NCBI GenBank assembly: GCA_965649825.1
Contig: OZ287699.1
Location: 310,001-374,000, forward strand
Source of the DNA: Penicillus capitatus
Lineage: Eukaryota > Plantae > Chlorophyta
DNA length: 64,000 bases
Direction of reading: 5' to 3'
Shown here: one piece after another, positions 19,609 through 62,774 of the stretch
How the letters are laid out: the number at the start of each line of letters is the position of its first letter
How positions within the stretch are numbered: position 1 is the first letter of the stretch
Translations under genes and position numbers: made by a program
Notes under the pieces: model-generated
What the model was told of the DNA's origin: nothing
The model's input: only the letters and a program-made list of their open reading frames with translations
The model's database searches: none

Positions 19609-21186
19609 TTATCTTCGCCACTGCGGCGAGATCTCGAGGGGAGCATCGTCGCAGGACGAATAATCGACTCTAGACGTTTCCCACATCTTGATCCCACATC
19701 GTTCTAATGCCTCCTCCACGCGTTTCATCTCAGAATCGGCGGGCAGCTGGCCGTCCAGGGTCCCAAGCACAGCGCCTGTATAAGAGATTCCGGCAGCGGC
19801 GGCGGCGCCCGAATAGTAAAACAGTGCCCAGGTGAGCTCATCGTCCGCATCCACAATTTTCCAAAACTCATTCGACGTCACACCATTGTCCAGAACGGAA
19901 AAGTAAAAAGCTCCAGGATCTTTGGCTCGACGCACACGGTAGTGCCTTCTTCTCCAAACCGCTCGGCCATCCACAGTAATGACCTTGAACACGGGGTCAT
20001 ACCACATAGACGCACGGGCCTTGCCTTGGTAAAACAGCTGAAACTGACAGGGAAAGTAATCATAGGCCGGATTCTTTCCCAGCGTCACTTTCCAACTCCA
20101 CGCTTCCGTGCCCAGATTTCCAATAAAGATCTCTTCCGCTGTGTCAAAGGTAAGCGGTGCTCCACGAAAGAATCTCATTGGCTGAACGTCCGGTAACTGA
20201 GGGATGGAGGCTGTGTTGCCCAGACAGTTGTGTTTTTGCAGTATGCACAAAGAGAATTTCTCCAGGAGCTCTGATTCATACGAGACAATGCAACGATAGC
20301 TGCACACTTGATCATTGATTCCGCAGGAATTGATGCAGTCTAACCCCTTGCGGCATTGAGGGTCCAACAAACATCGTATCACTTCTTCTCTACAGTTGCG
20401 ACCGATGCATTTGATTGCCTCGAAGTCCGGATTCAGATCTGCCATTTCGGGCAACGGCGTGATAAACTGATCTGTTGCCAACTGCAAGAGATAGACGATG
20501 TCGTCTGATGTCTGCCGAGACCAAATGGTCGCCATAGCTGCATAGACATCTAGTATCTTCCTCGCAGCGGAACCGGGAATCCGCGACTGGATTCGCTGGA
20601 GCAGATTCGGAGCGGCAGGATTCATGCCACCAAGCGAAATCCAATGCGACAATTCGTCTGCCGTGCTTTCGAAACAGAGCACGACTTTCGGTCGACTTTC
20701 CTGGAGAAAACGTCCGTAGACAGCGGCGTCGATGTCACCCTTGACGATTCCGACAAAGAGAACGAGCTCTGGACGAGGCTTTGACTCTGAGATGGGATCT
20801 GAGGGAGACATGACGTTCGGCAAGAATCCAGGGTAACTCCATTTCAATCGTTGGCTGATGTGTTTCATGACATCGGACCACGACGGTCCAAAGGGACTCC
20901 TTTCGTCCGACGCAACGATCAGGACATTCACGACCTCCATCGTCTCCTCCGACATGTCTCGTTCCTAGAAACGCATTTTCGGTACAGAAGCTGAGCAGAA
21001 GCTGCGGACATGGGCACTGTCGGTCAGCGAATCGCCGATCTGCGTTCTCGTGCGGGACGTCACTTTTCTGATGGGAAGCGTCCGAACAGAAGACGATCGG
21101 TTCGACTGGTGCACCGTCGGGAGTGCCGTCACGTGATTCCTTCCCCACACACATCGTCCATTCAGCCGAAGGCGCAGAGACTGCAT
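19609..21186 (-). CDS. VDR: Violaxanthin de-epoxidase-related protein
   Basis: Cys-rich CLLDPQCRKGLDCINSCGINDQVCSYRCIVSYES and lipocalin-like GKNPAYDYFPCQFQLFY in the 448-aa ORF 19609-20955. A transit-peptide exon from ATG 21186 splices in phase 0 (inferred). Confidence 0.88.
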
Positions 21187-23777: not shown

Positions 23778-25047
23778 GTGCACGCAAGAAGTCGATGAAG
23801 TGATGATAACAAAGGGACGAATGTTTGTACGTTCGCAGAAACAGTGTCAATGGGTCTGTCTAAAGCAAGAAGGGTAGAATAGAAATGGTTGGCAACCTGG
23901 TGTCTACGTTTCCCAAGCTGCTGCCGTTTGATTTGTCAAGTTTGCAGATTCATCATTCGACATCCCAATATCGTAACCTCAGCCATCCAGTGTTGACTCG
24001 AAGCTCGTAATAGGACTCTAGCATTGAGCGGTGCGACAAGTCTTGGACTCGCTCAAGCCATCGATCATGACGTGCTGAATGGAAGATGGCTGTACAAAGA
24101 GTGACATGTTCAAGATATTGTTCGGTAGTTGCAAAATAAAGGCTGACAATATCGTCCAGTCGTGTATCTTGAGTCTTTACAGGAGACGACTGGTTGTCAT
24201 GACGTCCCGAATATGATAGAGAGAACTGCCACAATCGTCACTGACAGTGGTGCAGAAGTAATAAGAGTGACACGTTAAATCAGTGCCCCGCAGTTCGCGT
24301 CCCCTGGGAGGTTCGAGCGCGTTAGTCGACCTATAGTGCCTACGGCGACTGCATGGGCACCGCCACCTCAGCTTTCTCCATTAAGCAAATCTTTCTAATG
24401 TTACATTCGCCTGATCGAGAAACAGCCGTACCTCATTTCTCAACCTCATTTGCCGGTCGATGTTTTCCGTGCACGAAAAGTTCGACGACGAATTCGACGA
24501 GGTGAGGCCAAGACGCATTTCTCTGATCAACTAAGCCAATTTCCGTTTGCAGAACGAAGTTTGGAGCAACGACCAGTCGCTGGACCGCGAAGAAATGGCC
24601 GACGGTTCTCTCCCCGACCCGGAGCGTTCTGAAAAACAAAACGGAAAGAAAAACGTATGCGGATTTGATGATAAAGTAAGCGTATCTAACACATCAGTGA
24701 ATGCTGACACGGGCGCGCATTCTCTAGTGTGTCCGTTTAACGGAGGCCGAAGAAGGCACATTCACCAAAGAAGGTCTGAAGAAGTCGTTCGGAGACAAGG
24801 CTCGGATGCCTCGCCAAATCGAAACCCTTGAAAGGAGAAACGTGGCTGGCGGCGAGGCGCGCAATGGCGCCCCCCGACGAGGAAAGGTTAGTAAGAACCG
24901 TGCGCTGTTTAGAGAATCCGAGTCGTGCGTCTTATCAGGGAGGCCGACGCGAGGACGGAAATTCGAGTCCGAGATTCAACGTTTATCAAGCCTCGAAGGT
25001 GATAAGCCCTTTTCCGATGACTTGTATCGCAACAACGTGTTCGACAG

Positions 25048-27432
25048 ATGTGGGCCCCTGTGAGCGTCGTCAACACGTTTCCCTCGCACACTTCTCGTCC
25101 TCGATGCCGCGAAAAGGGCTCTTCGGTTGCCTTCTCCAGAGAATTCGACCGCGGACAAGCTCCGCGCATCAAAGCACGCATGACAAGGGGCACTGCTGCC
25201 AAAAACACGCCCCCGGCCAGCTCGACTTGGCCGCCTCTCCCTCAGACTGAACGTCACAGCTCCCGAGGTTCGACACTCGCTCGCGCAGAGGTGCGGTGTT
25301 CTTTGTCCCGCTCCGGCTTGCAGCTCTCCTCACAGGGAAACCCAAAGGAGATCTGCGAGGTCGAGCTAGAGGGATACGGTCTCGCGCAGATCCTTCAGGT
25401 CCGAGGGAGGTTTGCAGGGAGGATTGTCGAGCGAGCGGGACCGTTCTCGAGGAGGATTACCGTTCCACTCGTCTCCAAGGGTTTCTCCGATCCGGAAGAA
25501 GCGACGCGAGGATTGGCTCGCCTGCCGCCGAGTGCCGTCCGCCGTCGCGTTCACGTCCTTTCCGACAGAGAGAATGGCGTGGGGACGTTCATCTACGTGG
25601 GAGATCTAGGACTTCTCGGAGGTGGAGACAGAGAGCCCCCGGCCGGAGGCGGCGCGCTCGGACGCCAAGCTGCCGCCAGCTCCCGGCCAGAGAAGAAGCA
25701 CTCTCTGGTCTCGCCCGACATCTTTCGCCACTATGCCGGGAGGAAGGAAGAATTCAGCCAACTCTTCGAGGCGTTCACGTCGAGCGGCGAGTCGGTCGTC
25801 GCCAAGGCAATCGCAGGCCCCGCCGGCATAGGAAAGACTCAGCTCGCAATAAAGGTGTTCGAGTGGCTCAAGATGAACGACAGCTACGACCACACCTTCT
25901 GGATCCCTTCGGACTCGAAGGAGAACCTTTATGCCGCCTTCTTGAACATCGCCGAATACCTGGAGATCTCCGCAGACGACGAGATCCCGGTGCTCGTCCG
26001 CCGCGTTCACCAGGAGCTCGGAGGGTCGCGATGCCTCTACGTCTTCGACGACGCCTTTGATCTCGAACTGATCCGCGAGTACCTTCCACCGGAGGTCGGG
26101 CATGCGATTGTCACGACGCGAAACGCTGTAGCAGGGAGCTGGGAGGGCGACACGGTGCAGCTCGGGCCGTTCGACGAGTGCGATGCGTGGTTCCTCGCGC
26201 ACAGCTTCGGATACACCCGGTCGCCGCACTCGGAGGGTCTGGACGATTTGATCGAGTTGCTGCCTCCCTACCCGCTCACTCTGGCGCAGTTCTTCTCGAT
26301 GATGAAGTACGAGGGCGTGCCGAGCCCCGCCGAATGGCTGCATCAGGTGGAACGGTACGCCCCTTCGAGATACGAAGCCGGGGTCATAGAGATGCTCTCC
26401 GAAGAGCACGACGTCAGAGGAGCCAGCGCGATGGTCTACCTGTTTCGCTCGAACGTGCTGAGCATTCTGAGGGAACCCGACGACCTTGGAACGCACTGTC
26501 TCGACACACTCATCAGGCTGTCGCTGCTCGACCCAAATGGAGTGCCCATCAAGTGGGTGTGCGAATGGCACGGACAAGGAGATCGGCAATCCGAAGCAGA
26601 AGCGCAGACATCCGTAAAGGTTCTCGAGCACTACTCGTATGTCTCGTGGAACGAGAAGAACAATCAAATCTACATTCACGCAGAGACACAGCTCCTTGCG
26701 AGACACCTGCTCTTACACAGCAACGAAGCAATTCCCGAATGGAGAGAGAAGCTCGCGAAAAAGGCCGAAGACAGAGCCAGAGATCACATCAAGACCATCG
26801 TCCGTTCGATAAGTAAATACACCAGCGACTGGAGAACGGATCGTTCGAACCGAGAATCGTGGACGTCGCTCGCGCGGAACGGGGTCTCGCTCCTCAAACA
26901 CTGCGAAGAGAGCGACGACATTGGCGTGGAGTTGAAGCTAGTCGAACACATGGCAAGGGCCTACTCCGAGATGTGCATGTTTCGCGAGTCGCTCTCCCAC
27001 CTTCAAAGAGCCCTCGACGTGTGCGAGCGCCTCAACGGCGATGCGGACCATCCGGACCTCGTCCAATGCATCCAGAGCTACGCCATCGGACTCTCGCGAG
27101 TCGGAAGAGACAGCGAAGCACTGCCGTTCCGCAAAAGAGCCCTCGACATGTGCGAGCGCCTCAACGGCGACGCGGACCATCCCGACCTCGTCCAATGCAT
27201 CCGGAACTACGCCGTCGGACTCGAGCGAGTCGGAAGAGACAGCGAAGCACTGCCGTTCCGCAAGAGAGCCCTCGACATGTGCGAGCGCCTCAACGGCGAC
27301 GCGGACCATCCGGACCTCGTCCAATGCATCCAGAGCTACGCCATCGGACTCTCGCGAGTCGGAAGAGACAGCGAAGCACTGCCGTTCCGCAAGAGAGCAG
27401 AAGAAATGCATAAGCGGCTTGGAAATCAATAA
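25048..27432 (+). CDS. NB-ARC (STAND NTPase)-TPR NLR-like protein, 3-repeat copy
   Basis: Walker A GPAGIGKT, Walker B CLYVFDDA, IVTTRN, PYPLTL (GLPL-like) and IYIHAETQ (MHD-like), followed by 3 HPDLV-type 43-aa repeats. True start and a possible 45-nt intron (25291-25335) are uncertain. Confidence 0.9.
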   Translation: MWAPVSVVNTFPSHTSRPRCREKGSSVAFSREFDRGQAPRIKARMTRGTAAKNTPPASSTWPPLPQTERHSSRGSTLARAEVRCSLSRSGLQLSSQGNPKEICEVELEGYGLAQILQVRGRFAGRIVERAGPFSRRITVPLVSKGFSDPEEATRGLARLPPSAVRRRVHVLSDRENGVGTFIYVGDLGLLGGGDREPPAGGGALGRQAAASSRPEKKHSLVSPDIFRHYAGRKEEFSQLFEAFTSSGESVVAKAIAGPAGIGKTQLAIKVFEWLKMNDSYDHTFWIPSDSKENLYAAFLNIAEYLEISADDEIPVLVRRVHQELGGSRCLYVFDDAFDLELIREYLPPEVGHAIVTTRNAVAGSWEGDTVQLGPFDECDAWFLAHSFGYTRSPHSEGLDDLIELLPPYPLTLAQFFSMMKYEGVPSPAEWLHQVERYAPSRYEAGVIEMLSEEHDVRGASAMVYLFRSNVLSILREPDDLGTHCLDTLIRLSLLDPNGVPIKWVCEWHGQGDRQSEAEAQTSVKVLEHYSYVSWNEKNNQIYIHAETQLLARHLLLHSNEAIPEWREKLAKKAEDRARDHIKTIVRSISKYTSDWRTDRSNRESWTSLARNGVSLLKHCEESDDIGVELKLVEHMARAYSEMCMFRESLSHLQRALDVCERLNGDADHPDLVQCIQSYAIGLSRVGRDSEALPFRKRALDMCERLNGDADHPDLVQCIRNYAVGLERVGRDSEALPFRKRALDMCERLNGDADHPDLVQCIQSYAIGLSRVGRDSEALPFRKRAEEMHKRLGNQ
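27049..27400 (+). repeat. 129-bp coding tandem repeat x3 (last copy truncated)
   Basis: Unit HPDLVQCIxxYAxGLxRVGRDSEALPFRKRALDMCERLNGDAD. Confidence 0.95.
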
Positions 27433-28081
27433 AATCTCCATCTTGATCGGCTAACGTATTTTCATCTTGTGAGTTCCATTTGAAGGTTTCTACACATGTT
27501 TGTTTTTGCATATCGTGGCCACGTCGCTAGGACTCCGGAAACGCGAACGACGACGAAGGCTTGTTGCATCACAAGGATTGTAAACACCTTTGTGGTGCGG
27601 ATTAAATGGACTCGGAACGAACTAACGCGTTAAGCCGAATGCACGATCACGTCGAATGCATCTCTCCTCGGTAAGTTGCGCGAAGCCGAGTCTGATGCCA
27701 ATACGACAAAATCCGATATGTTGGCAATTGCGTTGATTGTTACGCTTCTACTATCGTACAAACTGCAGCATGGCTACCGGTTCTGAGTAGGGTGTAAGTG
27801 TTTCTCGTTGACGAATTTGCAATTGCTTATGATGTCGTCTTCTCATTCGATGTCACTAGCGTTTTGCGATTTTGCCACTCCATGCTGCTAGATTAGAGTG
27901 AGAAAACGGAGTTATCTGCTCTTCCTTTCCGGAGCTAGTGGTAAATGCTTTTCGTCTAGGTAGCTTTTTGCAATTTTCTTGCCGTTGGAGCGTCGATTGT
28001 AGAGAAGCGTAAAGTTGTGATATCGATATCGTTGCACTGCTTTCATCGACGGATCCCGATAACGTCGACTGAACAAAGGGG

Positions 28082-54590: not shown

Positions 54591-56128
54591 GAAGATGAAG
54601 TCCGGCCTGGACCCGATGTTTCTTCCCAGAGAAAGAAATAGCACGAGGAACTGGACGCATGCATAAAAAAGTGAAAGGGACAGAATCTGGTGTGGTGTCA
54701 ATCAAAGAGTTCAATCTCTTTATCAATGGACTGACGTCGTAAGGAGGAACTTCTGTCGTCTGTGGATCCAATGCCATGCGAATCTGTCCTCGAGGACACA
54801 TCATTCGCATCGGATTGATCGCACCGATCACACCATTCTTCGAATTGATGGAGAGGGAGAGCATTTCCGAAACGCCCGTAACCGCTCGTTAGAACTGGAT
54901 CTCCTCACAAAGGCCCGTTTCCTTGTGCTTTGAGAGAATAGATATCTCTTGGCAACCCATACATCCATCAGACGATCTCAAGGAGTGAAGCTGGATATGC
55001 TGGTTCGATTCATGAAGGCATTTGAACATCTGTTCCGTTGTGCAATCGCCAAGACACGCTGGTATCGTCACTCCTCTGGCAGCTTCCTGCAAAGTCTTGA
55101 CAAAACTAAGGATTTGATGACACCTGAGTTTGCTCATGGTCAGGTGCTGCGATTCAACACTGTTGAGTGATGGATGTATCGACAATGAGAGTGAGCCATT
55201 TACCGCAGGGAATCTATACTCGGACAGCCAAAGAGTGGAACACCGACGATGAGGTATGCTTGCTGAATCTCGTCTCTATTCCGCTTACGGCCATACTTTG
55301 GTCCAATCGGTTAACGGCGAGATCAAAGTGTTTTAAGTCATGACGTTCGTTTTGGGACGTAAATGGTAAACGAGAGTGTGTCAGCAAAATATGGCGTGAT
55401 GGAACATCTGCCTGCCGTATTTCAAGGCCGTCGTTCGTCGTTTCGTATCTTCACCGGCGTCGTACTCGGCCCATTTCATCAAGCAGATTTCCACTTCTGC
55501 GATCCATCTGATCTCCACTTGCCTGACGTAATTTGTTTATCCATGCATCGAGTTCGCAAAACTACCCGCGACGCATTTAACGCGGTAAAAAACCTGTTCT
55601 GAAAAACGCTCGTGTGAGTTGCCGTTCGCAGAACCAAGTTTGGAGCAACGACCAGTCGCTGGACCGCGAAGAAATGGCCGACGGTTCTCTCTCCGACCCG
55701 GAGCGTTCTGAAAGACAAAACGGAAAGAAAAGCGTACGTGGATTTGATGATAAAGTAAGCGTATCGAACACATCCGTGAATGCTGACACGGGCGCGCATT
55801 CTCTAGTGTGTCCCTTTAACGGAGGCCGAAGAAGGCACATTCACCAAAGAAGGTCTGAAGAAGTCGTTCGGAGACAAGGCTCGGATGCCTCGCCAAATCG
55901 AAACCCTCGGAAGGAGAAACGTGGCTGGCGGCGAGGCGCGCAATGGCGCGCTCCGACGAGGAAAGGTTAGTAAGAGCCGTGCGTTGTTTAGAAAATCCGA
56001 GTCCTGCGTCTTTCATCAGGGGAGCCGACACAAAGACAGCACATCGAGTCCGAGACTCAACGTTTATCAGGCTTCGAAGGTGATAAGCCCCTTTCCGATG
56101 ACTTGTATCGCAACAACGTGTTCGACAG

Positions 56129-59100
56129 ATGTGGGACCCTGTGAGCGTCGTCAACACGTTTCCCTCGCACACTTCTCTTCCTCGATGCCGCGAAAAGGGC
56201 TCTTCGGTTCTCTTCTCCAGAGAATTCGACGGCGGACAAGCTCCGCGCATCGAAGCACGCACGACAAGGGGCACTGCTGCCAAAAACACGCCCCCGGCCA
56301 GCTCGACTTGGCCGCCTCTCCCTCAGACTGAACGTCACAGCTCCCGAGGTTCGACACTCGCTCGCGCAGAGGTGCGGTGTTCTTTGTCCCGCTCCGGCTT
56401 GCAGCTCTCCTCACAGGGAAACCCAAAGGAGATCTGCGAGGTCGAGCTAGAGGGATACGGTCTCGTGCAGATCCTTCAGGTCCGAGGGAGGTTTGCAGGG
56501 AGGATTGTCGAGCGAGCGGGACCGTTCTCGAGGAGGATTACCGTTCCACTCGTCTTCAAGGGTTTCTCCGATCCGGAAGAAGCGACGCGAGGATTGGCTC
56601 GCCTGCCGCCGAGTGCCGTCTGCCGTCGCGTTCACGTCCTTTCCGACAGAGAGAATGGCGTGGGGACGTTCATCTACGTGGGAGATCTAGGACTTCTCGG
56701 AGGCGGGGACAGAGAGCCCCCGGCCGGAGGCGGCGCGCTCGGACGCCAAACTGCCGCCAGCTCCCGGCCAGAGAAGAAGCACACTCTGATCTCGCCCGAC
56801 ATCTTTCGCCACTATGCCGGGAGGAAGGAAGAATTCAGCCAACTCTTTGAGGCGTTTACGTCGAGCGGCGAGTCGGTCGTCGTCAAGGCAATCGCAGGCC
56901 CCGCCGGCATAGGAAAGACGCAGCTCGCAATAAAGGTGTTCGAGTGGCTCAAGATGAAGGGCAGCTACGACCACACATTCTGGATCCCCTCGGACTCGAA
57001 GGAGAACCTTTCCGCCGCCTTCCTGAACATCGCCGAATACCTGGAGATCTCCACAGACGACGAGATCCCGGTGCTCGTCAGCCGCGTTCACCAGGAGCTC
57101 GGAGAGTCGCGATGCCTATACGTCTTCGACGACGCCTTTGACCTCGAACTGATCCGCGAGTACCTTCCACCGGAGGTCGGGCATGCGATTGTCACGACGC
57201 GAAACGCTGGAGCAGGGAGCTGGGAGGCCGACACGGTGGAGCTCGGGCCGTTCGACGAGTGCGATGCGTGGTTCCTCGCGCACAGCTTCGGATACACCCG
57301 GTCGCCGCACTCGGAGGGTCTGGACGATTTGATCGAGTTGCTGCCTCCCTACCCGCTCACTCTGGCGCAGTTCTTCTCGATGATGAAGTACGAGGGCGTG
57401 GCGAGCCCCGCCGAGTGGCTGCATCAGGTGGAACGGTATGCCCCTTCGAGATACGAAGCCGGGGTCATAGAGATGCTCTCCGAAGAGCACGACGTCAGAG
57501 GAGCCAGCGCGATGGTCTACCTGTTTCGCTCGAACGTGCTGAGCATTCTGAGGGAACCCGACGACCTTGGAACGCACTGTCTCGACACACTCATCAGGCT
57601 GGCGCTGCTCGACCCGAATGGAGTGCCCATCAAGTGGGTGTGCGAATGGCACGGACAAGGAGATCGGCAATCCGAAGCAGAAGCGCAGGCATCCGTAAAG
57701 CTTCTCGAGCACTACTCGTATGTCTCGTGGAACGAGAAGAACAATCAAATCTACATTCACGCCGATACACAGCTCCTAGCGAGACACCTGCTCTTACACA
57801 GCAACGAAGCAATTCCCGAATGGAGAGAGAAGCTCGCGAAAAAGGCCGAAGACAGAGCCAGAGATCACATCAAGACCATCGTCCACTCAATAAGCAAATA
57901 CACCAGCGGCTGGAGAACGGATCGTTCGAACCGAGAATCGTGGACGTCGCTCGCGCGGAACGAGGTCTCGCTCCTCAAACACTGCGAAGAGAGCGACGAC
58001 ATTGGCGTGGAGTTGAAGCTAGTCGAAAACATTGCATGGGCTTACTATAAGTTGTGCATGTTTCGCGAGTGGCTCTCCCACGGTCAAAGAGCGCTCGACG
58101 TGTGCGAGCGCCTCCACGGCGATTCGGACCATCCGGACCTCGTCCGATGCATCCAGAACTACTCCGCCGGACTCTCGCAAGCGGGAAGAGACGGCGAAGC
58201 ACTGCCGTTCCTCAAGAGAGCCCTCGACATGTACGAGCGCCTCAACGGCGACGCGGACCATCCGGACCTCGTCCGATGCATCCGGAGCTACGCCGCCGGA
58301 CTCTCGCGAGCGGGAAGAGACACCGAAGCACTGCCGTTCGACAAGAGAGCCCTCGAGATGTGCGAGCGCCTCAACGGCGACGCGGACCATCCGGACCTCG
58401 TCCGATGCATCCGGAACTACGCCGTCGGACTCGAACGAGTGGGAAGAGACACCGAAGCACTGCCGTTCCGCAAGAGAGCGCTCGACATGTGCGAGCGCCT
58501 CAACGGCGACGCGGACCATCCGGACCTCGTCCAATGCATCCAGAGCTACGCCGTCGGACTCGAGCAAGTCGGAAGAGACACCGAAGCACTGCCGTTCTAC
58601 AAGAGAGCGCTCGACATGTGCGAGCGCCTCAACGGCGACGCTGACCATCCGGACCTCGTCCTATGCATCCGGAACTACGCCGCCGGACTCTCGCCAGCGG
58701 GAAGAGACAGCGAAGCACTGCCGTTCCTCAAGAGAGCGCTCGACATGTGCGAGCGCCTCAACGGCGACGCGGACCATCCGGACCTCGTCCGATGCATCCA
58801 GAGCTACGTCGTCGGACTCTCGCAAGCGGGAAGAGACGGCGAAGCACTGCCGTTCCTCAAGAGAGCGCTCGACATGTGCGAGCGCCTCAACGGCGACGCT
58901 GACCATCCGGACCTCGTCCTATGCATCCGGAACTACGCCGCCGGACTCGAGCAAGTCGGAAGGAACAGCGAAGCACTGCCGCTCTACAAGAGAGCGCTCG
59001 ACATGTGCGAGCGCCTCAAAGGCGACGCGGACCATCCGGACCTCGTCCGATGCATCCGGAACTACGCCGTCGGACTCGAGCAAGTCGGAAGAAACAGCGA

Positions 59101-60061
59101 AGCACTGCCGTTCCTCAAGAGAGCGCTCGACATGTGCGAGCGCCTCAACGGCGACGCGGACCATCCGGACCTCGTCCAATGCAACCAGAGCTACGCCGTC
59201 GGACTCTCGCGAGCGGGAAGAGACAGCGAAGCACTGCCGTTCCGCAAGAGAGCGCTCGACATGTGCGAGCGCCTCAACGGCAACGCGGACCATCCGGACC
59301 TCGTCCGATGCATCCGGAGCTACGCCGTCGGACTCGAGCAAGTCGGAAGGAACAGCGAAGCACTGCCGCTCTACAAGAGAGCGCTCGACATGTGCGAGCG
59401 CCTCAACGGCGACGCGGACCATCCGGACCTCGTCCTATGCATCCGGAACTACGCCGTCGGACTCTCGCAAGCGGGAAGAGACGGCGAAGCACTGCCGTTC
59501 CTCAAGAGAGCGCTCGACATGTGCGAGCGCCTCAACGGCGACGCTGACCATCCGGACCTCGTCCAATGCAACCAGAGCTACGCCTTCGTACACTCGCGAG
59601 TCGGAAGGAACAGCGAAACACTGCCGTTCCTCAAGAGAGCGCTCGACATGTGCGAGCGCCTCAACGGCGACGCTGACCATCCGGACCTCGTCCAATGCAA
59701 CCAGAGCTACGCCGTCGGACTCTCGCGAGTGGGAAGAGACAGCGAAGCACTGCCGTTCGGCAAGAGAGCGCTCGACATGTGCGAGCGCCTCAACGGCAAC
59801 GCGGACCATCCGGACCTCGTCCGATGCATCCGGAGCTACGCCGTCGGACTCTCGCGAATCGGAAGAGACAGCGAAGCACTGCCGTTTTACAAGAGATCGC
59901 TCGACATGTGCGAGCGCCTCAACGGCGACGCGGACCATCCGGACCTCGTCCAATGCAACCAGAGCTACGCCGCCGGACTCTCGCGAGTGGGAAGAGACAG
60001 CGAAGCACTGCCGTTCCGCAAGAGAGCAGAGGAAATGCGTAAGCGGCTTGGCAGTCAATAA
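56129..60061 (+). CDS. NB-ARC-TPR NLR-like protein, 15-repeat copy (1310 aa)
   Basis: Same NTPase motifs as copy 1. The length difference 1310-794=516 aa equals 12 x 43 aa. Confidence 0.92.
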   Translation: MWDPVSVVNTFPSHTSLPRCREKGSSVLFSREFDGGQAPRIEARTTRGTAAKNTPPASSTWPPLPQTERHSSRGSTLARAEVRCSLSRSGLQLSSQGNPKEICEVELEGYGLVQILQVRGRFAGRIVERAGPFSRRITVPLVFKGFSDPEEATRGLARLPPSAVCRRVHVLSDRENGVGTFIYVGDLGLLGGGDREPPAGGGALGRQTAASSRPEKKHTLISPDIFRHYAGRKEEFSQLFEAFTSSGESVVVKAIAGPAGIGKTQLAIKVFEWLKMKGSYDHTFWIPSDSKENLSAAFLNIAEYLEISTDDEIPVLVSRVHQELGESRCLYVFDDAFDLELIREYLPPEVGHAIVTTRNAGAGSWEADTVELGPFDECDAWFLAHSFGYTRSPHSEGLDDLIELLPPYPLTLAQFFSMMKYEGVASPAEWLHQVERYAPSRYEAGVIEMLSEEHDVRGASAMVYLFRSNVLSILREPDDLGTHCLDTLIRLALLDPNGVPIKWVCEWHGQGDRQSEAEAQASVKLLEHYSYVSWNEKNNQIYIHADTQLLARHLLLHSNEAIPEWREKLAKKAEDRARDHIKTIVHSISKYTSGWRTDRSNRESWTSLARNEVSLLKHCEESDDIGVELKLVENIAWAYYKLCMFREWLSHGQRALDVCERLHGDSDHPDLVRCIQNYSAGLSQAGRDGEALPFLKRALDMYERLNGDADHPDLVRCIRSYAAGLSRAGRDTEALPFDKRALEMCERLNGDADHPDLVRCIRNYAVGLERVGRDTEALPFRKRALDMCERLNGDADHPDLVQCIQSYAVGLEQVGRDTEALPFYKRALDMCERLNGDADHPDLVLCIRNYAAGLSPAGRDSEALPFLKRALDMCERLNGDADHPDLVRCIQSYVVGLSQAGRDGEALPFLKRALDMCERLNGDADHPDLVLCIRNYAAGLEQVGRNSEALPLYKRALDMCERLKGDADHPDLVRCIRNYAVGLEQVGRNSEALPFLKRALDMCERLNGDADHPDLVQCNQSYAVGLSRAGRDSEALPFRKRALDMCERLNGNADHPDLVRCIRSYAVGLEQVGRNSEALPLYKRALDMCERLNGDADHPDLVLCIRNYAVGLSQAGRDGEALPFLKRALDMCERLNGDADHPDLVQCNQSYAFVHSRVGRNSETLPFLKRALDMCERLNGDADHPDLVQCNQSYAVGLSRVGRDSEALPFGKRALDMCERLNGNADHPDLVRCIRSYAVGLSRIGRDSEALPFYKRSLDMCERLNGDADHPDLVQCNQSYAAGLSRVGRDSEALPFRKRAEEMRKRLGSQ
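58130..60030 (+). repeat. 129-bp coding tandem repeat x15 (last copy truncated)
   Basis: 15 HPDLV units counted in the translation. Confidence 0.95.
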
Positions 60062-62774
60062 AATCTCCATCTTGATCGGCTAACGTATTTTTATCTTATG
60101 AGTTCCATTTGAAGGTTTCTACACATGTTTGTTTTTGCATATCGTGGCCACGTCGCTAGGACTCTGGAAACGCGAACGACGACGAAGGCTTGTTGCATCA
60201 CAATGATTGTAAACACCTTTGTGGTGCGGACTAAATGGACTCGGAACGAACTAATGCGTTAAGCCGATTGCACGATCACGTCGAATGCATCTCTCCTCGG
60301 TAAGTTGCGCGAAGCCGAGTCTGATGCCAATACGACAAAATCCGATATGCTGGCAATTGCGTTGATTGTTACGCTTCTACTATCGTACAAATTGTAGCAT
60401 GGCTGTCGGTTGTGAGTTGGGTGTGATCGTTTCTCGATGACAAGTTTGCAGTCCTTGCTCTTAATGTCGTCTTCTCATCCGATGCAACTAGCGTTGTGCG
60501 ATTGGGCCAATCTAATCTAGCAGAATAGAGCGAGAGAACGGATTGTTTTTTCTCTTTTTCCGAATCCAGTGGTACATGCTTTCTGTCTAGAACACTCTCC
60601 ACAATCTCCTTGCCGTTGGAGCGTCGATTGTAGAGAAGCGTAAGGTTGTGATATCGATATCGTTGCACTGCTTTTATCGACGGATCCCGATAACGTCGAC
60701 TGAACGAACGGGCGCGACAATAGTAGCTTTTGATTTAATCAAGCAAGTGGTTCTTTTATTAGGCGTCGTCTTATGAGCAGCATCATGTGTCGCAAACGCG
60801 TTTTTTCAATAGTTTGTAACGCGTTCTTAAGTACAGACGCCTCTGATCTCGTGCTTGGGTATTCTCTATTTGTTAACTATTGTAACATTCAAACTCTTAT
60901 CTTGTTCTTTTTTTTTCGTTTCCACGTCGTTCACTGTGTCGTCCGAACTGTTCATTGCGGCTAGTTGTACCAAGTTCTTTGTTGCAGCACTCGATTCGCC
61001 ATGTGGCCTGACAGAAGTCCGCAGAGAGATGGGAAGTGATTTCTGCTGAAGGATTTACACATATTTTTACCGTGCCATCTTGAATTGATAGAAATCGGTT
61101 GTTTTGAGCGGGCCGGGTGTATCTGATGAATATCAGTCAGTTTTACCGATAGCCCTGGCGAAGAGGGTAGCCTCAGAGAGCTGCATCTTCGGGCTCGATT
61201 CGTCGTCACAGTGCAGCGAACCAAGTTTGATCTTCTGCAGCCTTTCTCATTCTTCCCGCAACATAGAACCGTCCTACTCATTTTCTACGAGGAACAGCAT
61301 TAAGGGATAGGTTTCAGCAGGCGAGGTGTACGATAAGAAAATACGGAACACCTGCAAGGCAGGTCTTCTTAAGCAATCTACGACGAGTGATTTCTGCATC
61401 CGGTGGCCTTAGGCTCGCTAATGCGAGGATCGCAGTTGTGGACGTTGTGCGGAAGGCTCCTCTAATGAGTAGTGCTGCAGATCGGATAACCGAGGTCTGA
61501 GATTTTTTTTCTCTGGGCGAGGGCCCTACCGTCAGCTGACTAGATTTGTGCACCGTGGAAGAGAACACAAGGGCGATGGTGCAAGCTTGAAAAAGAGTTC
61601 GTGCAACACCAGGTGTTGCACCCTAAAGACTGTTACCGATGCGTTTGATATACCGTAGTCACCAAAGCTACGTACGACAGTCGTGAAAATCCGCCGCGAG
61701 GGGAGCAATAATTTTATTCTATCCTATTGTGATTCCATAGCGGCAAAGTTCAGTAAACGAGACTGCTCTCTTAAAAAAGCGTCTATGCACAAGAATACAA
61801 GGTATATATATTTGCTGTCCTCTCATTCGTTGTCATTCGCAGGTAGGGTCACATCAGTCGTCTTCTGGCAACTACACTATCCTATCCTATTCAATGTTAT
61901 GGACCTCCAAGAAACGACTGCTGCCCAGATGAAGACGATTCTTCAGGATAGAACCGGCGGTCAACGCAGAATAAAACCCAAATCCTTTCTTGCTGGCTGT
62001 CTGGTCAATAGAACTACATTTAGATAAGAAACGATCCGATCTCGCTTAAAAAGGAGATCAAAACATCGAGTAAACGAAGAACCAAAGAAAAAGCCGCGAA
62101 CGTCTTCTCTGGCAAACAGGCAGGAGCCTTCAAACTTCGATCAAACTTTTATCGAGGTTTCACTAACGCAAGATTACTGATCACATCGATGCTCGATGCC
62201 AACAAACATACTCTTAAGTTAGGGGAAGGCCACTGTCTGGCCGAAGCATCCGATATCTGCAAAAGTGCCACATAAAAGACATGCATCTCAGTGGCAGTTT
62301 GATTTGCAGAAAAGCGAAACAAACATAGTATTGTGGAAGCTCGTGTATCCGCAAAGACAAAATGATTAAAAACACATCGAGAAACGAAAGGGTCGATCTG
62401 CGAAAGAGTGCACCTACTCTCCATGCGGGTGTAGCGCTTCGAAGGCATCATTATCCGTCCCTATAAGAGAGAGACTAACGAGATCATCTTCTATTGTCGC
62501 CTTTGAACGATCGCTCGGCGAGTGCGGCGAGCGACAATCGTTGTGAAGAGTATTTACATCATTGTCTTCTACGCCGCGAAATCGGCCGATCGACATCACG
62601 CAACGATCAGCTGTCGCGTCACGTCACATCGCTAGCTCTAGCGATCTTGTCTGAACAAGTCTGACGGCGGTAGGGCGGGCTAAAGGACGAAAACGAAAAC
62701 ATCGGCACGCTGGCCGGCGTGACAGCATTGCTCTCTGGCACAACGGAATATTCCATTCTGTCCTCACTCCTCTA

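Follow-up and report, generated by a model that had tools for sequence, protein, structure and literature searches.

A KLC-like TPR array of near-identical units with diversified positions of a predicted groove in an NB-ARC protein of the green alga Penicillus capitatus

We analyzed a 64 000-nt stretch of the genome of the green alga Penicillus capitatus (assembly GCA_965649825.1, contig OZ287699.1, positions 310,001 to 374,000, forward strand), referred to below as the window. One of its genes, gene 1, codes for an NB-ARC domain and an array of tetratricopeptide repeats (TPR) similar to those of kinesin light chain (KLC). The array units are nearly identical, and their variation is concentrated at a few codons that coincide with peptide-contact positions of known TPR domains. 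The array has a mosaic structure, the contact codons show an excess of nonsynonymous differences, the number of repeats differs between duplicates and the units evolve in concert. With a probability of about 0.65, we read the array as the KLC-like TPR solenoid of an NLR-like STAND sensor whose units are shuffled and whose groove diversity is under selection. By analogy with known receptors, the groove may bind a ligand, the NB-ARC domain may serve as a switch and the protein may have a non-self recognition or immune role. A preliminary description of this DNA had proposed a mix-and-match binding-groove code generated by recombination under positive selection; the groove, the recombination and the selection each passed a test able to fail, and the interpretation as a whole was upheld.

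Gene 1 is a single uninterrupted open reading frame (ORF) encoding a protein of 1310 aa. Pfam detected an NB-ARC domain (38.3 bits versus a cut-off of 23.5) and, in 13 stretches each, matches to TPR_12 (329.2 bits, cut-off 30.1) and TPR_10 (297.9 bits, cut-off 27.5). A C-terminal, superstructure-forming repeat region of the sensor type is present: both Pfam and an AlphaFold2 (AF2) model place a 16-unit TPR array directly after the NB-ARC and linker region. The main parts of the gene are as follows.

56129..60061, plus strand: gene 1, NB-ARC and TPR protein of the NLR-like/STAND type (ORF; Pfam; about 32 paralogs)
56432..56707, plus strand: small conserved N-terminal region (ICEVELEG...GDLGLLGGG), about 95 aa, kept in paralogs P0001, P0003, P0004 and P0012
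56840..57436, plus strand: NB-ARC nucleotide-binding domain, aa 238-436 (Pfam)
56897-56920, plus strand: NB-ARC P-loop GPAGIGKT (motif located by script)
57116-57136, plus strand: NB-ARC Walker B motif LYVFDDA (motif located by script)
57191-57205, plus strand: NB-ARC motif VTTRN (motif located by script)
57752-57772, plus strand: YIHAD motif, MHD-like, downstream of the NB-ARC domain (motif located by script)
57926..57994, plus strand: capping helix 5′ of TPR unit 0 (helix 11-33 in the AF2 model of aa 590-968)
58001..58129, plus strand: degenerate TPR unit 0, aa 625-667 (AF2 helices 36-52 and 56-74)
58130..59935, plus strand: fourteen complete TPR units of 129 nt or 43 aa (period, alignment and AF2 model)
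59936..60058, plus strand: unit 15, the C-terminal cap unit, with a normal helix A and the divergent end KRAEEMRKRLGSQ (alignment)

The stop codon at 60059-60061 closes unit 15, so that the array without unit 0 extends over 58130-60058; the divergent end of unit 15 is also found in paralog P0012 and in gene 2, a second gene of the window described below. The AF2 model of aa 590-968 (mean pLDDT 87.3, pTM 0.79) has a predicted helix pair in every unit: helix A at unit positions 2-17 (16 residues), a turn at 18-20 and helix B at 21-39 (19 residues). In a Foldseek search of the PDB with this model the top matches were TPR domains of LGN/Pins and of KLC1 and KLC2, with probability 1.00. For the N-terminal region at 56432-56707, the Pfam search gave no match and the AF2 model reached a pLDDT of only 41. 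The first ATG of gene 1 is situated ∼100 codons upstream of the first region conserved among paralogs. Long ORFs are also present over the array in other frames and on the minus strand, such as 58032-60083 (683 aa) and 58019-58648 (minus strand); the repeated unit is GC-rich and stop-poor, and therefore we do not regard the ORFs at 58019-60083 as genes.

Tandem Repeats Finder reported one array at 58084-60027 with period 129, 15.1 copies, 90% matches and 0% indels. The motif HPDLV occurs 15 times at an exact spacing of 43 aa (129 nt), the first H codon being at 58130, where the preliminary description had put it. That description counted 18 units; the actual array consists of 15 HPDLV units, the degenerate unit 0 and the capping helix. 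Mean pairwise identity of the units is 91.4% at the nucleotide level and 81.5% at the amino-acid level (87% against the consensus). All units are distinct, and the closest pair is separated by 2 nt.

Eleven variable positions, numbered from the H of HPDLV, had been listed with their residues, and the unit alignment reproduced all of them: 6 (R/Q/L), 8 (I/N), 9 (Q/R), 10 (N/S), 13 (A/V/F), 16 (S/E), 17 (Q/R/P), 18 (A/V/I), 21 (D/N), 22 (G/T/S) and 28 (L/D/R/Y/G). These positions make up 26% of the unit and hold 77% of all pairwise amino-acid differences, with lesser variation at positions 12, 14, 15, 24, 27, 31, 33, 35, 39 and 41. The stretch CERLNGDADHPDLV is indeed nearly fixed, its exceptions being one Y35, one K39 and two N41. 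Recurrence of short sub-blocks was likewise found as described, with RCIRN in units 3 and 8, LCIRN in units 5, 7 and 11 and QCNQS in units 9, 12, 13 and 15; they occur in different combinations with GLEQVGRNS (units 7, 8 and 10) and GLSQAGRDG (units 1, 6 and 11). A higher-order period of the window array was not supported (lag-3 similarity, p=0.087). The array of paralog P0001 (L002) is arranged differently: alternation of the unit types HPDVLRCVNNYALGH... and HPDLVLSIGNIAEVL... gives it a super-repeat of 86 residues.

When plotted on a helical wheel, the diversity of helix A (positions 2-17) is directed to one face; its resultant of 0.48 was reached in 1127 of 50 000 permutations (p=0.023). 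The idea that variation is confined to one helix face holds for positions 6, 9, 10, 13, 16 and 17, all within ±62 degrees of the mean direction, but not for position 8, which is on the opposite face, nor for position 18, located in the turn, and positions 21, 22 and 28, located in helix B.

Gap-free matches to the 34-residue Pfam models show that a unit position equals the canonical TPR position plus 4 (TPR_2 profile positions 5-31 correspond to aa 934-960 and TPR_1 profile positions 12-30 to aa 1070-1088). With this offset, canonical position 8 (unit position 12) holds Ala, rarely Ser or Val, and canonical positions 20 and 27 (unit positions 24 and 31) hold Ala, all of them small residues. 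Unit positions 6, 9, 10, 13, 16 and 17 correspond to canonical positions 2, 5, 6, 9, 12 and 13, by which the TPR1 and TPR2A domains of HOP contact their peptides on the concave face (Magliery and Regan, PMC1261162). The probability that all six HOP contact positions fall by chance within 11 of 43 positions is 7.6e-5.

A second comparison was made with KLC1, in which the residues contacting JIP1 and TorsinA peptides line the concave groove (PMC6214655). With one numbering offset fitting all of them, these contacts correspond to unit positions 6, 9, 10, 13, 14, 16, 17, 21 and 35. Thus 7 of the 11 variable positions are KLC1 cargo-contact positions in experimentally demonstrated use, and 6 of the 11 are HOP contacts; variable positions 18 and 22 are next to the KLC1 contacts at 17 and 21. 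In helix B, position 28 shares an i/i+7 stripe with KLC1 contacts 21 and 35, and its family-wide residues (Y, R, F, L and D) do not fit a simple buried hydrophobic site. Both mappings support the proposal of a binding groove, in which a ligand may bind. Placement of the variable sites on the concave surface was borne out by homology for the contact positions, but not for positions 8 and 28, which fall on core positions.

Gene 1 belongs to a family of at least 32 paralogs with 53-69% identity, found in two related ENA assemblies on contigs of Mb scale. Unit length is exactly 43 residues, both in the window and in each of the ∼30 paralogs. Within-array entropy computed over 18 arrays of at least seven units each was highest at positions 28, 6, 17, 13, 16, 9, 22, 10, 18 and 21, in this order. 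Most family members have an additional, mostly helical N-terminal region of ∼480 aa between the conserved N-terminal region and NB-ARC; both window genes are without it, and the Pfam search found no match for this region (P0003 aa 82-562, at 10243-11712 of L003; also P0004 and P0001). A word-indexed homology search with the NB-ARC region gave only 3 matches, and an exhaustive HMMER search gave 5472 matches at E<=1e-3, only 35 of them at E<=1e-30. The nearest named NB-ARC relatives outside the family (P0184, P0189 and P0201) have 31-37% identity and come from 3-4 kb contigs labelled as Bacteroidota metagenome-assembled genomes; they may represent eukaryotic fragments binned wrongly or STAND proteins truly of bacterial origin, and are uninformative in this respect.

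The groove code may be real and yet belong to a protein of another kind, an ATP-regulated scaffold or adaptor in which each patch of repeats holds a different endogenous partner, with no function as an immune receptor. The closest solved folds, KLC and LGN, are indeed cargo and polarity adaptors, and neither Pfam nor AF2 revealed a death-type or other effector domain. Still, the family is not only large but lineage-restricted and fast-evolving: in a positional ortholog pair the NB-ARC region is 55% identical, as compared with 89% for a violaxanthin de-epoxidase (VDE)-like gene located 35 kb upstream. The paralogs share contigs and their repeat number is unstable. Such features are a signature of NLR-type receptors and are unlike those of housekeeping adaptors (PMC4986451, PMC13449251); we consider the scaffold or adaptor function unlikely.

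Selection was assessed with Nei-Gojobori estimates for the 14 complete units. Within the array the synonymous divergence (dS) is 0.064 and the nonsynonymous divergence (dN) 0.100, a ratio omega of 1.56. Omega is 4.6 for the 11 codons named in the preliminary description and 0.44 for the other 32. As the former set was picked after seeing the data, the six HOP contact codons were used as the test set. For these six codons the proportion of nonsynonymous differences (pN) is 0.296 versus a unit-wide synonymous proportion (pS) of 0.061, a pN/pS of 4.8 (event-count binomial p=0.008); among 200 000 random sets of six codons, 91 reached this pN. The whole-unit excess of dN over dS had been a candidate proof of selection; with a codon bootstrap p of 0.15 it was dropped and replaced by the literature-defined codon set. 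Three other young arrays (dS <=0.07), those of P0012, P0004 and P0006, have whole-unit omega of 1.0, 4.5 and 1.4 and groove-codon pN/pS of 4.6, 12.6 and 4.1, respectively. The claim of positive selection is accordingly sustained at groove codons defined from the literature, in the window array and in these three.

A neutral origin of the pattern, in which unconstrained surface sites drift in a recently amplified array and conversion homogenizes the remaining sites with no diversifying selection, appears improbable. Several facts would suit it: the whole-unit dN/dS does not exceed 1 significantly, omega is below 1 in older arrays and the canonical TPR positions 2, 5, 6, 9, 12 and 13 are in general the most variable and least constrained ones (PMC1261162). 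However, drift predicts pN close to pS, while pN at groove codons is 4-13 times pS in four independent young arrays. In helix B the charged positions 23, 29, 30, 33, 36 and 37, which should be exposed to solvent, are nearly invariant in the window array and in the family units; variation is therefore no general property of exposed residues, and exposure alone is insufficient as an explanation. Also, the same few residues return at each variable position across arrays.

Recombination among the units is indicated by several results. A single tree fails to accommodate 68 of the 120 pairs of informative codon columns. The pairwise homoplasy index (PHI) is significant at the nucleotide level (p<=0.0004 for k=3 and k=5, 0.007 for k=8) and at the codon level (p from 0.0001 to 0.002), neighbouring columns being more compatible. 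Unit 11 combines unit 5 (nt 1 to ∼36) with unit 6 as an exact chimera, and units 7 and 10 are chimeras with one mismatch; both have the synonymous codon AGG at R20 along with a common 3′ block. The Ser/Glu alternative at codon 16 (TCG versus GAG, three nucleotide changes) is found in four arrays, those of gene 1, gene 2, P0012 and P0004, and P0004 holds both forms in spite of an array-wide dS of 0.008. Several arrays also have the variants TAC/CGC/CTC of codon 28 and CGG/CAG of codon 9 in common. Multi-nucleotide variants shared in this way are not newly arisen in each array; they were copied and reassorted. The recombination part of the earlier proposal is thus well founded.

Mutational hot spots, such as CpG sites, could imitate such combinations at a few codons with no recombination, and some variable codons do contain CpG: CGA/CAA at 6 and 17, CGG/CAG at 9 and GCG/GTG at 18. 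Nevertheless, we find this explanation very doubtful. The synonymous CpG third positions of CCG codons (P2 and P26) are invariant in 15 units, which CpG hypermutability fails to explain, and there is no synonymous variant at the third positions of TCG (S16) and GCG (A18). Two forms of codon 16 three nucleotides apart within an array of such low dS, the exact chimera in unit 11 and the AGG codon that units 7 and 10 share together with their 3′ block also speak against it, while PHI compatibility decays with distance, contrary to what recurrent mutation would give. CpG or other base-specific mutagenesis was rejected as the source of the variation; the substitutions involve all four bases, and the CCG third positions are fixed. 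Mis-assembly or consensus polishing, to which tandem arrays of ∼91% identity are exposed, is a very improbable source of the unit order, unit number or chimeras; the exact period with zero indels, the frame intact over 1.9 kb, the absence of identical units (the closest pair again being 2 nt apart) and the same architecture and variable positions in ∼30 paralogs from independent long-read assemblies all speak against it.

The window itself contains a recent duplicate of gene 1.

55619..60712, plus strand: duplicated segment holding gene 1 (blastn of the window against itself; partner 24540-28081)
25048..27432, plus strand: gene 2, recent duplicate of gene 1, 794 aa, 3 TPR units (alignment; Tandem Repeats Finder)

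The two segments have 95.4% nucleotide identity outside the extra repeats. Gene 2 is co-linear with gene 1, with 40 differences in the first 667 residues; the copies differ chiefly in the number of their repeats, 3 units in gene 2 versus 15 in gene 1. For gene 2, Tandem Repeats Finder reported 3.1 copies of the 129-nt period at 27005-27398. The NB-ARC region serves as an internal control: between the two genes it has dS 0.070 and dN/dS 0.30, an indication of purifying selection. Over the same synonymous distance, the cap and unit 0 have omega 1.19. In unit 0 (58001-58129 versus 26920-27048) 10 of the 43 residues differ, at positions 10, 11, 13, 16, 17, 18, 24, 28, 39 and 42, and six of these differences are at hypervariable positions (10, 13, 16, 17, 18 and 28). 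In the 5′ part of the ORF (aa 1-211; 56129-56761 versus 25048-25680), dS is 0.012, with 11 nonsynonymous and 2 synonymous differences; this part was either homogenized more recently or is partly noncoding.

Both genes have positional orthologs on ENA contig ctg303740 of a related genome, P0003 (19 in-register units) for gene 1 and P0012 (6 in-register units) for gene 2. Repeat number therefore varies both between the duplicates (3 versus 15) and between positional orthologs. Both window genes are of the P0012 type, with a short N-terminus and the same C-terminal end; from this sequence comparison, it is probable that a copy of gene 2 replaced the former sequence of locus 1, with later expansion of the array. 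Concerted evolution is observed as well: dS is 0.064 within the window array versus 0.71 against the P0003 array, and the array-wide majority codon differs from P0003 at codons 1 and 38 (synonymous) and 39 (N versus H).

We propose the following mechanism. In the protein, an NB-ARC ATPase switch would sit between a small N-terminal region and a 16-unit KLC-like TPR solenoid. The 129-nt units would stay nearly identical through their recent amplification and through unequal exchange or gene conversion that is still ongoing, while about ten codons per unit would escape homogenization, namely codons 6, 9, 10, 13, 16 and 17 on the groove face of helix A, along with the diversified codons 18, 21 and 22 in the A-B turn and at the start of helix B and codon 28 within helix B. 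A small alphabet of residues could be kept at these codons and reassorted between units, so that each unit would present a different patch of a continuous inner groove. The same exchange processes would alter the number of units and reassort the sub-blocks, with selection keeping the diversity of the groove. If the protein works like other STAND proteins, binding of a ligand to the groove might free the NB-ARC domain from an inactive state, and nucleotide exchange, oligomerization and signalling might then follow.

Several points weigh against this reading. Mapping to the surface rests on homology and helical geometry rather than on coordinates. Two variable positions, 8 and 28, coincide with core positions of the canonical TPR, W4 and F24, respectively, and Asn8 is found in the four QCNQS units of the window array only, Ile8 being present in 207 of 237 family units.

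59183, 59570, 59699 and 59957, plus strand: Asn8 codons of units 9, 12, 13 and 15, always linked to Q6, Q9 and S10

As regards selection, the whole-unit omega of 1.56 is not significant by the codon bootstrap given above, the nonsynonymous excess in the window array rests on only 6 synonymous events and dN/dS is an imperfect measure for repeats of a single gene that recombine. In older arrays (dS 0.17-0.66), omega is 0.25-0.59 and groove-codon pN/pS only 0.5-1.9. Groove pN is 0.20-0.37 in all arrays of this dS range, a steady level compatible with fast early diversification followed by saturation, and also with weaker selection. The exchanges could have occurred within the array or between paralogs; the data fit both sources and do not separate them. 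Finally, no N-terminal effector domain of gene 1 was recognized by Pfam or AF2.

One could also imagine that the arrays diversify somatically among the nuclei of one siphonous thallus and thus provide an anticipatory repertoire of receptors. If it were so, one giant cell with its very many nuclei would possess a population of receptor variants. The evidence shows frequent recombination of the arrays over evolutionary time only, and we regard the idea as highly improbable.

The remaining part of the window has the following context. Positions 6568-35693 are syntenic with ctg303740 (L004 and L005) at 72-82% nucleotide identity. That contig has ∼20 kb of extra sequence between the points matching window positions 23861 and 23972, including a retrotransposon with protease, reverse transcriptase, RNase H and integrase domains (L005, 757-6905). 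In ctg303740 the gene 1 counterpart is situated ∼170 kb away and on the opposite strand, which implies a rearrangement. The window also holds a triose-phosphate-transporter gene, an ABC-2 gene and the VDE-like gene mentioned above, while a tRNA scan of the window found none.

19612-20955, minus strand: VDE-lipocalin (violaxanthin de-epoxidase-like) gene

The best named relatives of the VDE-like protein are from Caulerpa lentillifera (63%, EukProt EP00210) and Ostreobium quekettii (51%). This single gene places the window, with probability rather than certainty, in a siphonous green alga of the Bryopsidales. The order is reported to be without a working xanthophyll cycle (PMC13309506).

The window array adds an example from the green lineage to NLR-like receptors that diversify a repeat-encoded binding surface by shuffling of cassettes; the general understanding of the mechanism is unchanged by it. 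Controls are built into the locus, namely the 95%-identical duplicate with three units, the NB-ARC region under purifying selection and a syntenic ortholog with an old, diverged array. With at least 32 members and about ten readable variable positions per unit, the family is convenient for asking how TPR groove residues specify ligands, and it is also suited to asking whether siphonous algae have NLR-type immunity. In the library searched for literature, none of the papers among the matches listed connects NB-ARC to a bryopsidalean genus; a paper on NB-ARC in Ulva (PMC8891106) does not mention TPR.

Among systems with known structure, KLC TPR domains (PDB 3NF1, 5OJ8, 6FUZ and 3EDT) give the best sequence match to the array, with E of ∼1e-15 and gap-free helices. 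Unlike the window array, KLC has six repeats of low mutual identity, units of 42 residues, no NB-ARC and conserved cargo motifs instead of a diversifying groove; the additional 43rd residue of the window unit is in the inter-repeat loop (NGDADHPD versus LG-KDHPD in KLC). The NB-ARC domain of gene 1 is only distantly related to anything named.

The NB-ARC-TPR genes of the brown alga Ectocarpus (Zambounis et al. 2012, PMC3341825), candidate immune receptors for which a role in pathogen recognition was proposed, also come from an alga and have the same architecture, fast gene birth and death and reshuffled TPR modules. There, however, each TPR is a separate exon and the shuffling proceeds via exons and alternative splicing, whereas the window array is part of one intronless ORF of 3.9 kb. 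The WD40 repeats with high internal conservation (HIC) in the HNWD proteins HET-E, HET-D and HET-R of Podospora resemble the window array in having near-identical repeats, few hypervariable codons on the ligand surface, unequal crossing-over and repeat shuffling; they differ in forming a beta-propeller, in having NACHT rather than NB-ARC and in their demonstrated function in allorecognition.

The likeness extends to the fungal NLRs with HIC TPR repeats, such as Pa_2_10340, PaPnt1 and Pa_7_3550 of Podospora anserina (Dyrka et al. 2014, PMC4986451; GBE 2026, PMC13449251). The HIC class is defined by high internal identity of repeats (Psim >=0.7 or ∼80-100%; Dyrka 2014; GBE 2026), and it was recently shown to involve exchange of repeats between genes and to be present in NLR-like proteins across the domains of life, plants included (PMC13449251). 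The window array has repeat identity of 91.4% (nucleotide) and 81.5% (amino acid), varying repeat number, concerted evolution and a few hypervariable codons with pN/pS above 1, placed by homology on the ligand surface. Fungal HIC NLRs likewise combine NB-ARC with a KLC-like array of near-identical TPRs, in which few hypervariable codons, located on the concave side in a KLC2-based model, are under positive selection; their repeat number is polymorphic, their repeats evolve in concert and exchange between genes takes place. The differences are a unit of 43 rather than 42 residues, a length variant of the KLC-like TPR class, with the extra residue in the B-to-A loop, a green alga as host, no involvement of repeat-induced point mutation and no recognizable N-terminal effector. 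The novelty is modest, consisting of the 43-residue unit, the green-algal host and the N-terminal region with no Pfam match; the idea itself is not new, and the window array belongs to the HIC NLR regime already described in fungi.

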